64,000 bases of DNA, from assembly GCA_964304625.1 (NCBI GenBank), contig OZ199839.1, positions 8,852,221 through 8,916,220 on the forward strand. The letters run 5' to 3'. How positions within the stretch are numbered: the stretch's first letter is position 1; each line of letters begins with the position of its first letter. Both the position numbers and the translations under genes were made by a program. This document shows positions 12,711-28,500 of this stretch, piece after piece. The stretch is from Kudoa neothunni (Eukaryota > Animalia > Cnidaria). The notes under the pieces were generated by a model. The model was not told the origin of the DNA and did no database searches. It saw only the letters and a list, made by a program, of their open reading frames with translations.

Positions 12711-13258
12711 TTAGGTGTACTCGCTGGCATCAATCATCATTCTGCTTGTGTAAAAATCTTGAAAGAGATCTCTGAGGGTTGCTTGGATACTGGGAGTGAC
12801 TGCTTCTTGTCCTAACAATTGAGTAGCTATCGAAATCAACGACTTGTCCATTTGCTACAATCCGGATGTATAACAAGATCACCCAATTACAACATACGTT
12901 GTAGATATCCGGTGGAATGCCCATATCAGCCAAATTCTTGTTTACCTCATCTATAATTTCTTTACGTTGGGTGAAATCAGTCCATGCATACACCACCTTT
13001 ATAACTTGCAAAATAACGTATACGGTTTTGTTTTCGATTTCACACAAATAGTGGCCAATGTAAGACCTGAGATGGGGCTGTTCTTTTAGCATACTGAACG
13101 CGCAAATAGATCACAAAAATAAGTTTACAAATGTGGCTAACTTACTCCTTATAAATTTCGTACACAAAGTCCATATTTGCCTTGGTGGCGTGATGAACAA
13201 TTTTGTTCAAAAAATTTTTCAATTCACGGGCAGCCTCAACACAAGAACCCCTCGTCAT
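12711..13258 (-). CDS. Globin-fold protein lacking proximal and distal His (globin B, 150 aa, 3 exons)
   Basis: Exons 13258-13146, 13093-12898, 12854-12711 total 453 nt, open, with GT-AG introns of 52 and 43 nt. Protein: MTRGSCVEAARELKNFLNKIVHHATKANMDFVYEIYKD MLKEQPHLRSYIGHYLCEIENKTVYVILQVIKVVYAWTDFTQRKEIIDEVNKNLADMGIPPDIYN QMDKSLISIATQLLGQEAVTPSIQATLRDLFQDFYTSRMMIDASEYT. Introns fall at globin positions B12.2 and G7.0. ProC2, FG-corner G-I-P and GH LG.E.VTP patterns are present. Confidence 0.85.
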
Positions 13259-14242: not shown

Positions 14243-16653
14243 CTCTCTAACCGACTTGGGGTGTATTACACCCCGAAGCACTTTTATTCTGACCATAAAA
14301 TCTCGCGCGTTTTTTTTCAAATATTTTAAAATTTAGGCTATTCTCCTAAATTTGTGAATTCTAGCATTTACTAAAATTTAACGAAAAAAAACTAATTGGA
14401 TCACCCCCTAAAAAAATCCATCTTCTAACCAACTTGGGGTAAATATCACCCCAGACTTTTTTCTTAAATTTACTTTAAAAATTATTTTAATTTGAAATGC
14501 AAATTATTGAAAAATTCTATCGCAAGAATTTTGAGAAAAATAGAAATTACCACAACAAGTAATCCACTTCTGCTTATTTCGATAGCAATGTGCATTCCCT
14601 GCGAAAATCATGATGGATATAACTCGACTTTCTGCAGGTATAATATCCTTGTTTTTTTATTAAACAAATTGTAGGTCAATAATATTTATGATTAATTGTT
14701 TATTGATTTTGACTAAATGTCAATGTGATAATTCAATTCTGATTATAAATATGCCTCAAAATAATAGAGAGGGCTTACTCGAATAACACTTAGTACACAA
14801 ACAAGTTCCTGCAGATAAATTACAATGAGTAATCTTGATGAGTTTTTTAATTAAAATCTATCTTCTGAGAGTGAATTGGATGACTACTTGTTAGAACTAT
14901 CGAACTATTCTGACGAAATTTCAGAGAATGAGCTTTCTTACAATGCTACAACAAGCAAAAACGGAATTCTTTGGACAGTAAAGAAACCTACTTCATCGAG
15001 GACATCCATGGAGAATGCTATGAATTCCCATCCTGGCCCAACCGCATGCATACGCTACACAACGAGTCACAAATATTTTGGATTGCTTTGTTACATTTTT
15101 CACAACCCAAATTTGTGAAGAGATAACAAAATTTACAAATATATTTGGGAAACCAGATTTGTTGACTCATGGATTGATCCGGATGAAATAGAACTTAAAG
15201 GATTCCTAGGAATCCTAATATTAATGGCCATTCATAATGATAGAGAGGAGCCACTAACTGAACTTTTCAGTTTAACTGAAGGGAAGCCTATCTATCGGCA
15301 ACTCTTCACGTATCACCGATTTCAACAAATATTAAGATGTCTTCATCTTGATGACATGGCCACTATAGAACAACGGAGAGAAAACGATAAATTTTGTCCG
15401 ATTCGCAATGTATAGAACATGTGGATACAAATATTGCCGATGTGTTTTACTCCTAATGAAAATGTTACTGTTGATGAGCAGTTAGTATCTTTTAGAGAAA
15501 GGTGTCCATTTAGGCAGTATATACCGTTGAAACTAGCGAAATGCGGGTTGAAACTTTTCCTTCTTGTCGATCCTTTGGATAATTATATCGTAAGTATTTC
15601 TCCATACCTTGGAAAAAACGGAGGTGAAACTGGCCGAAGCTATAATGTTGAAGAAAGTATTGCCTTGTCTTGGCACCGTCGGTCCCTTTGTTCCATTCCG
15701 GAAGAACGATTGTGGCGGAAAATTTTTTTCATCCTTAAAGTTAGCGACCAAGTTATTAGAGAGACAGTTAACGTATCTGGAGACCATTCGACAAAGCAAA
15801 AGAGAATTACCATCAAGTGTTAATCCCTCCAAACACAGAGAGTTGTATAGGACCACCTTCGCATTTTTCAAAAAAATATGTTAACAAAAAAAGGAAATGT
15901 GTGGTTCCTTTGTTGACTGAGACTATTAAAACGAACATTTCTAGTGAATGTGAAAAGAAAAAGACCCAAACAATATTGTGGTACAACAAAACAAGAGGGG
16001 GAGAGGACACTGTTGACAGAATGTTGTCGTCTATCTCTGTAAGACGATTTAACAGGAGATGGCCCATGGTTGTATTTTTCAATATGGTCGGCTTATCATT
16101 AATAAATGCTTTTGCGTTATATAGAAACATATATAATGAAAAAGCGAAAATAAGGCGCACTTTTTTGAAGGAAATGGCCAAGACCCTGTACCAGCCGCTG
16201 ATGAACGGAAACATGAAAATAAATAAAGTCATCAAAAGATCTTCATCATCTATCCAAAATTCAAGTAACTTATCGTCAAAAATAAAACATGGACGTCGCG
16301 TGTTTTTGCCACGCCAAAATGACAAAAAAAACGTCCAATAAATGTTCGAATTGTAGTTAATTCTACTGCAAATTTTATTCTTCGAATAAATGTACAGATT
16401 GTGCTTAAGTTAAATCCTCATTTTTTATTAGTTTCTCAAAGTTTATTTCGTATCAAAAATATCGTTTGGTGGTTGTTTGATAGTAGTGTTTTAGTTTAAT
16501 CGAGTGCGATTACTTAATACAGTAATCTGAGTTTTCTCAAATTTCTTTCAATAGAATTATTTAAAAATTTCCAAATCAAATTAAAATAATTTTTAAAGGA
16601 AACTTAAGCAAAAAAGTCTGGGGTGATACTTGCCCAAAGTTGGTTGGAAGATA
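14243..16653 (+). mobile_element. piggyBac (PGBD4-like) transposon, frameshifted transposase
   Basis: TTAA|CTCTCTAACCGACTTGGGGT left end. The internal repeat 14420-14462 is the inverted complement of 16611-16653. Transposase fragments RFQQILRCLHLDD, VTVDEQLVSFRERCPFRQYIPLK, YNKTRGGEDTVD, RRWPMVVFFNM lie over ~14750-16410 with stops and frameshifts. Confidence 0.92.
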
Positions 16654-17013: not shown

Positions 17014-17596
17014 TCATTCAACATTTTTCCATCCTTCTCTGAAAGCAGCGAACAGTTTGGAGAGGGCACTATCTATCTCTGGAGTTATATATCCTTCACC
17101 AGCTTCTCTTTTGATGAGACCAACAAGAGATAATTTGAATTGCTAAATAACGAGAATATAACGCATAGATTAGCAACAGTAGCAAAATAAAGTTAAACAA
17201 TACATCATATTCCTCTTCAGTGATTTTGATGCCAGTGTGTTGAACATTTCCTTCGGTGATGGCTATGTCTAAGCTGGCACCATCTTCAGAGCTATCGACT
17301 ACCTTCAAAGCACAGCCAAAATATTATCAGTGTGTGACTTGGTTTCTTCTCAGATTTGTAGTTGAAATGCTTTTGAAGATTGGGTTTTTGCTTCAACATA
17401 CTAAATAGGAAAGAGCAAGATGATGCGATGAGCAAGCAGTAGAACAACAGTAGATAGAGAATTGAATAAAACCAGTTAGTTACTCTGTGAACACCTCGTA
17501 ACCAATGTCAACATTCTTCTTACCACACAAGTCCTTCACTTCGCCAAAGACTCTTTTGACAAGTTGAGCAGTAGCAGGATCCAATTTAGAAATCAT
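17014..17596 (-). CDS. Globin with PheCD1/HisE7/HisF8 (globin A, 3 exons); two 1-nt deletions in exon 2
   Basis: Exons 17596-17484, 17400-17204, 17142-17014; introns (83 and 61 nt) at B12.2 and G7.0. Restoring 1 nt at ~17351 and 1 nt at ~17308 gives MISKLDPATAQLVKRVFGEVKDLCGKKNVDIGYEVFTD MLKQKPNLQKHFNYKSEEETKSHTDNILAVLLKVVDSSEDGASLDIAITEGNVQHTGIKITEEEYD QFKLSLVGLIKREAGEGYITPEIDSALSKLFAAFREGWKNVE. Confidence 0.85.
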
Positions 17597-25583: not shown

Positions 25584-28500
25584 ATGGCCGAGGAAAAAGC
25601 ACCAATTAAAAAGAAGAATCCAAAAGCCTTCACTTACAGATCAGCACTGCGAGCAAAGAAGGGGCACGCTCGTCGTTTGGACCTTAAAACTCTAAAACAT
25701 CATTTACCTACAGTTAGCAAGTGGGTTATATGAATTTGAAAATAGATATATAAAAAATAATTTTTTTATTATCTAGGGAACAAGAACTACCTCCTCCGAT
25801 GGTTGTTGGAATAGTGGGACCTCCAAAGAGCGGTAAATCTACATTGTTGGCGTCTCTCATCCGACATTACACCAAATCACCAGTCTCTCAGATAAATGGT
25901 CCTATCACAGTGGTGACTGGAAAAAGAAGGCGCCTCACATTTATCGAGTGTAACAACGATATCAATTCGATGGTTGACCTATCGAAGGTGGTGGATTTGG
26001 CATTGTTGGTTATCAGCGCGAAAGACGGTCTACAAATGGAAATATTCGAGTTCTTGTCGATGATACAGGTGGCGGGGTTTCCAAAGGTGATGGGAGTGTT
26101 GACATTTTTGGACCGGTTCAACGAGAACAAATCACTTAAAGTATACAAGAAAAAGATCAAAGATCGCTTCTGGAGTGATGTGTATGCGGGGGCGAAAGTA
26201 TTCTACCTGACCGGTTTTAAGTATTCGTCGTACGGCAAAAGAGAAATAATTAATTTGGCTCGTTTTATTTCACTTGCCAAACCACCTCAGCTCTCATGGA
26301 GAACCTCACATGCCTATCTGATTTGTGATCGTATGGAAGATATAACCGATCCTGAAAAGATCCGTCAATCGAATAACAACTGCGATCGTACCGTGGCCAT
26401 ATACGGTTACGTTCAAGGGACACATTTGAAATCTTCACAAAAAATCCATGTGATGGGAGTTGGTGATTATTCGATTGCGAAAATTGGATATCTACCAGAT
26501 CCATGTCCATTTCCTGATCACACCAAAAATCGTCGACTCGACGTTAAAGAGAAATTGGTGTATGCACCATTCTCCAGCATCAACAACATTCTTTTCGATC
26601 AAGACGCAGTTTATATTGATGTTGGTCAAAGTCAAATGTTTCAAAAGCGTGACTCATCCACAACTGCCAATGACAACGATACAGCACTAGCTGACAACAA
26701 ATACATTAGTGCGATTCTCGATATGAAATATTCGTTGAAAGACAAATTGAAGGCATCCACGTTTGCACTTACAAACGATGTGCTTTTTGAAGATGAGAAC
26801 ACAAGCGACGAGGATGACAACTCACAGCTCGTAGAAACTCAATCTGAAGAAGAATCGGCTGATAATAATCGATCGCAGGTGTCACTGCCATCAATCATTG
26901 ATTCCAAGCGTATACGAGCAACTCATCAATCTCTTACCCTCCATCTCCCACATGTGGTACTGAAACAGTTGATTTACGGTAAACAACAAGATGATCAAGT
27001 AGTGGTGGGAGTAAGCAAGCATGAGAAATTGGTGGGTGACTTGTTTTTTGAGAAAACCAAATCTCCCAAATTTGACAACAGTATCTATGATTGTACAAGA
27101 ACTTCTAACAAATATGACCCACACGCACTAGCTGTTGATCAGCTAATTTCAAGTAAAGTCGATTGGATCAACACTCCCAAACAATTGATCTACAAATATT
27201 TTGTTACTGGTCAATCTGAGAATCTGGAGCGAAATCTTAATAATCTCTCCAACGCTGGTCTATCTACCTCAGTAGGAACGATTGATGGGGATGACGATGT
27301 CGATGTATTCGGAGATTTTGAGGATTTGGAAGAAATGGAAGATTCGGAGCAAGATCCACAATCTTCATCTGAAGAACAAATGTCAAGTGATGATGATGAT
27401 GAGATGATGATGAAAAAGAAACTGGAAAAGAAACAATTATTCGATAGTGCTTACGATTCCAAACAACTTTCCACATCATCGAAATCTAAAACAAAATCTG
27501 ATATAAATGGTGTTATTAAAACTAACGATGAGAAATATACTGAGGAAGAAGAGCGCTATTTGAATGAGTTGAAAAAGGCCGCGTTGGAACAAAAGAATGT
27601 ATAATCTGTTTAATTATAGTAGAATTAGTTGGTTCTTAAATTATCATTTAAAGATGGATGACAACGAATTCAAGCATCTTCCTGAGGAGCAACGTGTGTT
27701 GTATGAGGGCTACCGCCCTGGCATGTATGTTCGTGTGGAAATTGTTGATATGGAGAATGAGTTTGTGACAAACTTCAATCCCAAATACCCGCTGATTATG
27801 GGTGCTATTCTGGCTGGGGAGGATCAGATGGGTTACTTGAATTGTCGAATTAAAAAACACAAATGGTATCGACGTGTGCTGAAAAACAACGATCCGGTGA
27901 TTGTTTCATTGGGCTGGAGACGATTTCAAACCATCGCCTCCTTCTCCATGGAAGATCATAACAAACGCAAACGATACATCAAATACACCCCCGCTCATCT
28001 GCATTGCTATGCAACATGTTATGGACCTTTGACAACGCCTGGTGTGGGTGTATTTGCACTGCAGGTTCCACCTTATGTTCGAAAGGTATTTGTTTTGAAG
28101 AGATTTAGCGTTGAACTGGTTTTAGCGTGAATTTCGAGTCACCGCCACTGGAGTTACAATAGAAGTCGATAAAAGTTTGTCAATTGTGAAAAAGTTGAAG
28201 CTTATCGGTACACCTTGTAAAATATTTAAAAATACCGCTTTTATTAAGGTATTATTTTTCGAGTTTATTTCTTAAAATACATTGGTGGCTTTTCAACATT
28301 AACTTAAAAGCAAGTTAGTTCCGATTGTAGTATTTTTGATAATTAGGCTGTTAATATTATATTTAAGTTAAAATAAATATTTTATAAAAATATACATTTT
28401 TTTAATTTTTAAGCAATATTTTTTGAAAAACGCAATTATAAAAGAAATTCTACAAAAGGATTTATAAAAAGGGTTGTTGGAATCATATTATTATGTTTGC

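Follow-up and report, generated by a model that had tools for sequence, protein, structure and literature searches.

A highly diverged candidate globin gene with replaced heme-pocket residues, next to a His-bearing paralogue, in the myxozoan parasite Kudoa neothunni

The residues that contact heme are usually kept in animal globins. A survey of 187 arthropod globins described HbL domains of Daphnia in which F8 is Tyr or Val, and the HbL2 of the ostracod Puriana, with Met at CD1, Val at E7 and Val at F8, for which another, non-respiratory function was proposed (PMC7457136). Non-heme globin families have been described from bacteria and algae (PMC8717448), among them the N-terminal domain of RsbR and the B. 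anthracis proteins pXO1-118 and pXO2-61, in which a globin fold lacks both the proximal and the distal His (PMC8717448, PMC7475203), as appears to be the case in the gene studied here. A first-pass annotation of this gene had held that non-heme globin folds are known mainly from bacteria and phycobiliproteins, which overstated the novelty of the locus, since the crustacean cases were already reported (PMC7457136).

We studied this gene (gene B) and its paralogue (globin A) in a 64,000-nucleotide stretch of the Kudoa neothunni genome, hereafter the window (C2:8852221-8916220). The published assembly comprises 40.2 Mb in three chromosome scaffolds, together with one mitochondrial genome that is circular (PMC12239612), and our genome-wide searches covered 40,260,978 bases in four contigs. 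These contain neither the SL1 leader nor the TTAGGC telomere repeat, by which a nematode origin is excluded. Gene B lies at positions 12711-13258 of the window, on the minus strand, and consists of an intact open reading frame of 150 codons in three exons joined by GT..AG introns (Table 1). The exons account for all of its residues (37 + 1 split codon + 65 + 47 = 150), and an in-frame TAA is found two codons upstream of the ATG. The median intron length in K. neothunni is 49 nt (PMC12239612), and intron 1, at 52 nt, fits this value. The clean three-exon frame of 150 amino acids with intron phases 2 and 0, as initially annotated, is all in the sequence; so are the GHYLC motif, at residues 51-55, and the KVV followed by 20 residues up to Leu92 in gene B and His92 in globin A. 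The published annotation of the species drew on almost no parasite RNA reads (PMC12239612).

Table 1. Positions in the window of gene B, its candidate heme-pocket codons and the neighbouring features, with the aligned residues of E. coli Hmp and globin A.
Feature	Position	Strand	Description
Gene B exon 1	13146-13258	-	113 nt, from the ATG to codon 38, which is split; helices A and B as far as B12.2
Gene B intron 1	13094-13145	-	52 nt, GTAAGT..CAG, phase 2 = B12.2
Gene B exon 2	12898-13093	-	196 nt; helices C, E and F up to G6; central exon, putative heme-pocket site
Gene B intron 2	12855-12897	-	43 nt, GTATGT..TAG, phase 0 = G7.0
Gene B exon 3	12711-12854	-	Helix G from G7, GH corner, helix H; ends in TAA
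B10 (gene B codon 36, TAT)	13151-13153	-	Hmp Tyr29, A Phe36 (TTC), B Tyr36
C2			Hmp Pro37, A Pro44, B Pro44
CD1 (gene B codon 50, ATT)	13057-13059	-	Hmp Phe43, A Phe50 (TTC), B Ile50
E7 (gene B codon 60, AAA)	13027-13029	-	Hmp Gln53, A His60 (CAC), B Lys60
E11			Hmp Leu57, A Ile64, B Val64
F8 (gene B codon 92, TTG)	12931-12933	-	Hmp His85, A His92 (CAC), B Leu92
G5			Hmp Tyr95, A Tyr102, B Tyr102
Globin A	17014-17596	-	Exons 17596-17484, 17400-17204 and 17142-17014; Phe CD1, His E7 and His F8 kept
piggyBac-type transposase remnant	14876-16341 (15224-16338 when delimited more narrowly)	+	Decayed; PF13843 matches in three frames; between A and B, context only

Next, we studied the coding properties of gene B. 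Its frame contains no stop codons; of the other five frames of this DNA, four contain 8-12 and one contains 2. The exons have a GC content of 38-42%, compared with 23-26% in the 500-nt flanks; the published genomic and exonic values for the species are 30.4% and 36.8% (PMC12239612). Codon-usage log-odds, trained on a Pfam-confirmed BMS1-like gene of the same window (25799-28127), amounted to +0.25 bits per codon in frame and to -0.33 to -0.48 out of frame, and the in-frame score exceeded the 99th percentile of random 450-nt segments of the window. When neutral decay was simulated with substitutions only, the probability that the reading frame, the start codon and the four splice dinucleotides all stayed intact was 0.46 at 0.02 substitutions per site, 0.15 at 0.05, 0.02 at 0.1 and 0 at 0.2. 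The codon usage, the GC content of the exons and the decay simulations argue that gene B is a real gene and that coding constraint acted on it until recently, relative to the time scale over which it diverged.

Globin A adjoins gene B at a distance of 4 kb on the same strand. With one base of A skipped, the two proteins align without gaps over 128 residues at 27% identity (E 6e-15). Their intron positions and phases are identical, exon 1 measures 113 nt in both genes and ends in the same split codon (GA before the intron, T after it), and exon 2 opens with Met-Leu-Lys in both. Exon 2 of globin A is 197 nt long, its frame broken by an additional T within the run at 17307-17309; when one T is skipped the exon measures 196 nt as in gene B, the frame is restored and His60 falls in frame. 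The published assembly has a QV of 48.5, at which an assembly error in the short coding sequence of globin A is unlikely, and this gene may have become a pseudogene recently or may represent a haplotype variant. Between A and B we obtained a pS of 0.84 and a dN of 0.91; synonymous sites are thus saturated, which indicates that the duplication is old and makes dN/dS unreadable from the pair. Neither exon searches nor A+B exon profiles revealed a third member of the family in the whole 40-Mb genome.

Elsewhere in the window, the gene used for codon training (25799-28130, plus strand) is a BMS1-type ribosome biogenesis GTPase with AARP2CN, GTPase and RIBIOP_C domains. The two long open reading frames of this gene lie in different frames and share positions 27597-27604, implying that the frame changes there or that a short intron is present.

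To place the A/B family we used several kinds of sequence search. Run exon by exon at E values up to 10, the Pfam Globin model (PF00042) matched no exon of gene B or globin A, and no other Pfam family matched the exons of gene B. A six-frame scan of the genome with PF00042 recovered four canonical globins on chromosome 1 and neither A nor B. Exon 2 of gene B had no match among 1.84 billion representative proteins in an exhaustive phmmer search and retrieved nothing in a word-index protein search; a feature search of the ESM Atlas gave no usable match. The top matches of PDB sequence searches with exon 2 of gene B and exons 1 and 3 of globin A were non-globin noise, and the same was all that PDB searches with A+B profiles of exon 1 and of the E-F half returned. 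Alignment of A+B with hhalign to four canonical globin exons of Kudoa yielded nothing, and nor did a word-index search with a canonical Kudoa globin exon, performed to gather animal globins. Myxozoans are parasitic cnidarians whose sequences evolve very fast, which explains much of what we observed for A and B.

A profile-profile comparison gave a different outcome. The template was a profile of the globin domain of E. coli Hmp and 120 relatives, all of them close enterobacterial ones, so that it is narrow. Aligned to it with hhalign, the joined A+B profile scored 30.8 (P 2e-4, at a reported probability of only 47%) over 89 ungapped columns that set residues 32-120 of gene B on residues 25-113 of Hmp. 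Shuffling the columns of A+B (n = 300) gave a mean score of 12.3 and a highest score of 22.4, shuffling blocks of 10 columns (n = 200) gave a mean of 15.5 and a highest score of 25.7, and the reversed A+B alignment scored 11.9. The real score thus lies above all 500 shuffles, in agreement with the first-pass annotation of gene B as a globin homologue. Globin A alone aligned in the same register as A+B over 107 columns (P 1.3e-3); gene B alone did so over 33 columns, at a score that was not significant, and a profile of the E-F half-exon matched Hmp 74-96, again in this register (P 0.0098). When the exons were aligned to Hmp one by one, the right register came from the E-F half only, and the other exons had no match. 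In the PDB, the top match of the A+B profile of exon 3 was a cytoglobin (E 0.31), over a segment that runs from the last part of helix G through the GH corner into the beginning of helix H.

The same alignment, which was made without intron information, allowed us to place the introns on the globin fold. Intron 1 splits the codon of Asp38, aligned with Arg31 of Hmp (B12), after its second base and is therefore at B12.2, while intron 2 falls between the residues aligned with Asn96 (G6) and Ile97 (G7) of Hmp, that is, at G7.0. These are the positions that had been assigned to the introns before, now reproduced by an alignment blind to them. Both B12.2 and G7.0 are held to be ancestral to the globin genes of animals and plants (PMC3087553), and the coincidence of two positions and two phases with ancestral sites is regarded by us as the strongest single argument for the putative globin descent of the family. 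Moreover, both eukaryote globin introns being present argues against horizontal transfer from bacteria, an origin that we rejected on these grounds despite the likeness to Hmp. As to the designation "animal globin", the globin homologue part stands; the animal part rests mainly on the ancestral eukaryote intron positions, and no exon is recognised by Pfam Globin.

Congruently with this register, the hydrophobic core of the template is largely preserved. A total of 28 template columns have a hydrophobic residue in 80% or more of the Hmp relatives; gene B has hydrophobic residues in 24 of them, compared with 6-17 when the alignment is shifted by 1 to 6 positions either way, and globin A in 21 of the 28, compared with 7-13 when shifted. 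The frame, with 0 stops, the splice sites and the helix pattern of gene B are kept as previously annotated, and so is its core pattern, with 24 of 28 positions hydrophobic. Modeled with AlphaFold, exon 2 of gene B alone (pLDDT 72) formed helices at protein residues 44-75 and 78-94, with a break where the EF corner is expected and an end two residues past F8. Exon 3, modeled with globin A as a second row (pLDDT 80), formed helices at positions 2-14 and 21-45, and this arrangement, in which a six-residue loop separates helices of 13 and 25 residues and the second helix begins at Thr-Pro, resembles G7-G19, the GH corner and helix H. We take these exon-wise predictions as hints about the fold and not as a test of the whole fold. 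A Foldseek search with the exon 2 model alone found no globin and was uninformative.

These results bear on the possibility that A and B are not globins and instead form an orphan helical family with a chance likeness to them. Such a reading would agree with the failure of Pfam Globin on every exon, with the absence of a match to the canonical globins of the genome, with single-exon PDB searches that top out at non-globins and with the Foldseek search on the exon 2 model, which finds no globin. We nevertheless consider it very improbable, given that the profile-profile score exceeds all 500 shuffles and that one ungapped register sets Pro C2, Phe CD1, His F8 and Tyr G5 of globin A on the same residues of Hmp and puts both introns, with their phases, on ancestral globin positions; the cytoglobin that tops the PDB matches of the exon 3 profile, at the right helices, also speaks against it.

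To identify the heme-pocket positions of gene B we used the numbering of Hmp, in which Gln53 is E7 and His85 is F8, as is established for this family. In Vitreoscilla hemoglobin, the numbering of which is shared with Hmp, Tyr29 corresponds to B10 and Tyr95 to G5, according to titles cited in PMC8306070. The proximal His F8 is absent from gene B, and so are Phe CD1 and a His or Gln at E7. The only His residues of the protein are at 22, 23, 45 and 52, so helices E to H contain none, whatever the exact register. Tyr at B10, Ile at CD1, Lys at E7 and Leu at F8, initially assigned by alignment to globin A, were reproduced independently by the profile-profile alignment to Hmp, and the loss of the proximal and distal His and of the CD1 Phe was likewise borne out (Leu92, Lys60 and Ile50). 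If gaps are allowed, as in a MAFFT alignment, His52-Tyr53 of gene B would instead be paired with His49-Phe50 of globin A around CD1, but Ile is the residue that both ungapped alignments, to A and to Hmp, place at this position.

We then compared the codons of the two paralogues at these sites. They differ at three bases for F8, two for E7 and two for CD1, that is, at 7 of 9 bases, which makes a base-calling error at F8 not credible and indicates that the changes did not occur in a single recent step. A sequencing error at F8 was rejected, since TTG and CAC differ at all three bases. To judge from these codons, the heme-residue changes of gene B are not the outcome of one recent step.

One reading of these replacements is that gene B still binds heme or another tetrapyrrole through Tyr B10, Lys E7, Met95 or the His52 or Cys55 of the CD corner, and acts as a carrier, sensor or redox protein. 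The positions lining the pocket are hydrophobic, Val E11, Tyr B10 and Tyr G5 are present, the cell makes heme (see below), and phycobiliproteins hold tetrapyrroles in globin folds without His (PMC8717448), all of which would suit this proposal. Against it, helices E to H of gene B have no His, the only strong iron ligand common to all known heme globins is missing now that F8 is Leu, the CD1 Phe that packs against heme is gone as well, and none of the alternative ligands is conserved in globin A. We thus judge heme binding through an unusual ligand to be quite improbable.

It is also conceivable that gene B is a dying or dead relic, a duplicate that is dispensable or not expressed, whose heme residues drifted after constraint was lost and whose reading frame remains open because inactivation is recent. 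Some observations fit this view: the sister copy A is frameshifted, hinting that the small family is dispensable; a decayed piggyBac element lies between the two genes; and searches with exon 2 of gene B found no homologue outside the genome. In the simulations, however, an intact frame, start and set of four splice dinucleotides survive only ~0.05 substitutions per site of neutral drift. The three key codons differ from those of globin A at 7 of 9 positions. Moreover, 24 of 28 core hydrophobic positions are kept, and the codon usage of gene B is typical of the genes of the species. Weighing both sides, we find a relic unlikely; if gene B were one, the locus would merely record a globin loss in progress.

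To learn whether the loss of heme ligands in gene B could reflect a wider loss, we looked at the heme biosynthesis genes and the other globins of the parasite. Exon matches above the Pfam cut-offs were found for ferrochelatase (C2:9219863-9221030, ~300 kb beyond the window), ALAD (C3:6384091-6385292) and UROD (C3:1317163-1318646). A second ferrochelatase-like match, at C2:2724143-2724388, is weak (22 bits) and covers positions 111-188 only. On the strength of these gene matches, K. neothunni is able to make heme. The canonical globins comprise a tandem trio at C1:1992936-1996556 and a fourth, weaker one at C1:1472149-1472289; all four match PF00042, at 18-36 bits, with His at the E7-like and F8-like positions, and as far as sequence tells they are evidence that this parasite uses heme globins. 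Ferrochelatase, ALAD and UROD together with the canonical globins bearing both His residues indicate that the ligand loss in gene B is not part of a general heme loss, and heme auxotrophy was rejected as an explanation, given the presence of the three enzymes.

The canonical Kudoa globins share with A and B the genome and the size of a single-domain globin. Unlike A and B, they match PF00042 and have no B12.2 intron, and they show no detectable similarity to either gene; unlike gene B, they keep His at E7 and F8. The central exon of the canonical genes runs through the B helix, and the B12.2 intron has seemingly been lost in their lineage.

Taken together, our results lead us to favor, with some reservation, the reading in which gene B is a real gene that would encode a globin-fold protein no longer holding heme in the normal way. 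The structure of the gene, its paralogy with globin A, the globin register, the replaced residues and the signs of coding constraint are shown by the analyses above; the fold of the entire protein, the heme loss, the expression and any new ligand are part of what we infer here. Gene B and globin A would have originated by an old tandem duplication. Gene B has kept the introns at B12.2 and G7.0, the helix pattern, nearly all of the hydrophobic core positions, Pro C2 and Tyr G5, and has lost the residues that hold and tune heme, with Phe CD1 replaced by Ile, His E7 by Lys and His F8 by Leu. The protein is predicted to fold as a very diverged 3-on-3 globin devoid of the normal proximal heme bond. 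Its pocket would now be aliphatic, lined by Leu F8, Ile CD1 and Val E11 together with Tyr B10, and Lys E7 would stand at the mouth.

An aliphatic pocket with Lys and Tyr near its mouth leads us to guess that it binds a small molecule, and our best guess is a hydrophobic or carboxylate-bearing one, by analogy with the bacterial non-heme globin sensors and their fatty acid; a protein-protein role may be an alternative. The further proposal that gene B has been kept by selection as a heme-free animal globin fold, whose former heme pocket now accommodates a lipid or some other small ligand, is possible, and we put it forward tentatively while leaning against it. If it were true, gene B would be the first function-backed animal case, and in a muscle-dwelling cnidarian parasite.

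The parasite studied here has lost most of its ancestral genes. The A/B pair and the canonical trio on another chromosome amount to two very different globin lineages in it. Full-text literature searches returned no paper describing a myxozoan's own globin; by their titles and abstracts, the papers matching the search terms dealt with the fish hosts or with other matters. Neither globin nor heme is mentioned in a recent preprint on a myxozoan genome. Should gene B turn out to be expressed and free of heme, it would reveal which functions an animal globin fold can serve when heme is lacking, a question so far addressed only for bacterial sensor domains and phycobiliproteins. From a methodological standpoint, ancestral introns and the profile-profile register recovered, in a fast-evolving lineage, a family missed by Pfam and by exhaustive sequence search.

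Finally, we compared gene B with the known systems that it most resembles. With the globin domain of E. coli Hmp and of the Vitreoscilla type it shares Tyr B10, Pro C2, Tyr G5 and an I-x-P-x-x-Y stretch after helix F; in contrast to the Kudoa genes, which are single-domain and carry eukaryote introns, Hmp binds heme through His85 and has a reductase domain. The likeness to Hmp is thus that of a common 3-on-3 globin core and not of a close relationship. In the stretch after helix F (window 12898-13092 and 17204-17305, minus strand), an Ile, a Pro or Glu, and Tyr G5, spaced as in Hmp 90-95, occur in both A and B as they do in bacterial flavohemoglobins. By eye this stretch is closer to flavohemoglobins than to vertebrate globins, and it may be an ancestral 3-on-3 feature.

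The bacterial non-heme sensors, in which the pocket of a globin fold has been reused for a fatty acid, provide a model for a possible role of gene B. They differ from it in being bacterial and intronless and in belonging to a sensor-type globin lineage, and the position equivalent to F8 is occupied in them by an Arg that holds the ligand, and in gene B by Leu. Gene B is therefore outside this family, and what the two may have in common is a functional analogy only.

The closest parallel is offered by the crustacean paralogues, namely the monodomain HbL of Daphnia pulex and the HbL2 of Puriana. These are, like gene B, paralogues of animal globins with an intact reading frame and a replaced F8, known from their sequences only, and in Puriana HbL2, as in gene B, CD1, E7 and F8 are all replaced by non-ligating residues. 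By its descent, its intact reading frame and its non-ligating F8, gene B fits the descriptive class of animal globin paralogues with replaced CD1, E7 and F8. The crustacean proteins belong to a different phylum, arose independently and are easy to identify as globins; the Kudoa pair has diverged to a point where it escapes Pfam, and the residues of gene B are its own, with Ile, Lys and Leu at CD1, E7 and F8 and the Tyr at B10 kept. On this comparison of sequences, gene B is of the same kind as the Daphnia and Puriana paralogues, independently arisen in a cnidarian parasite and far more diverged.
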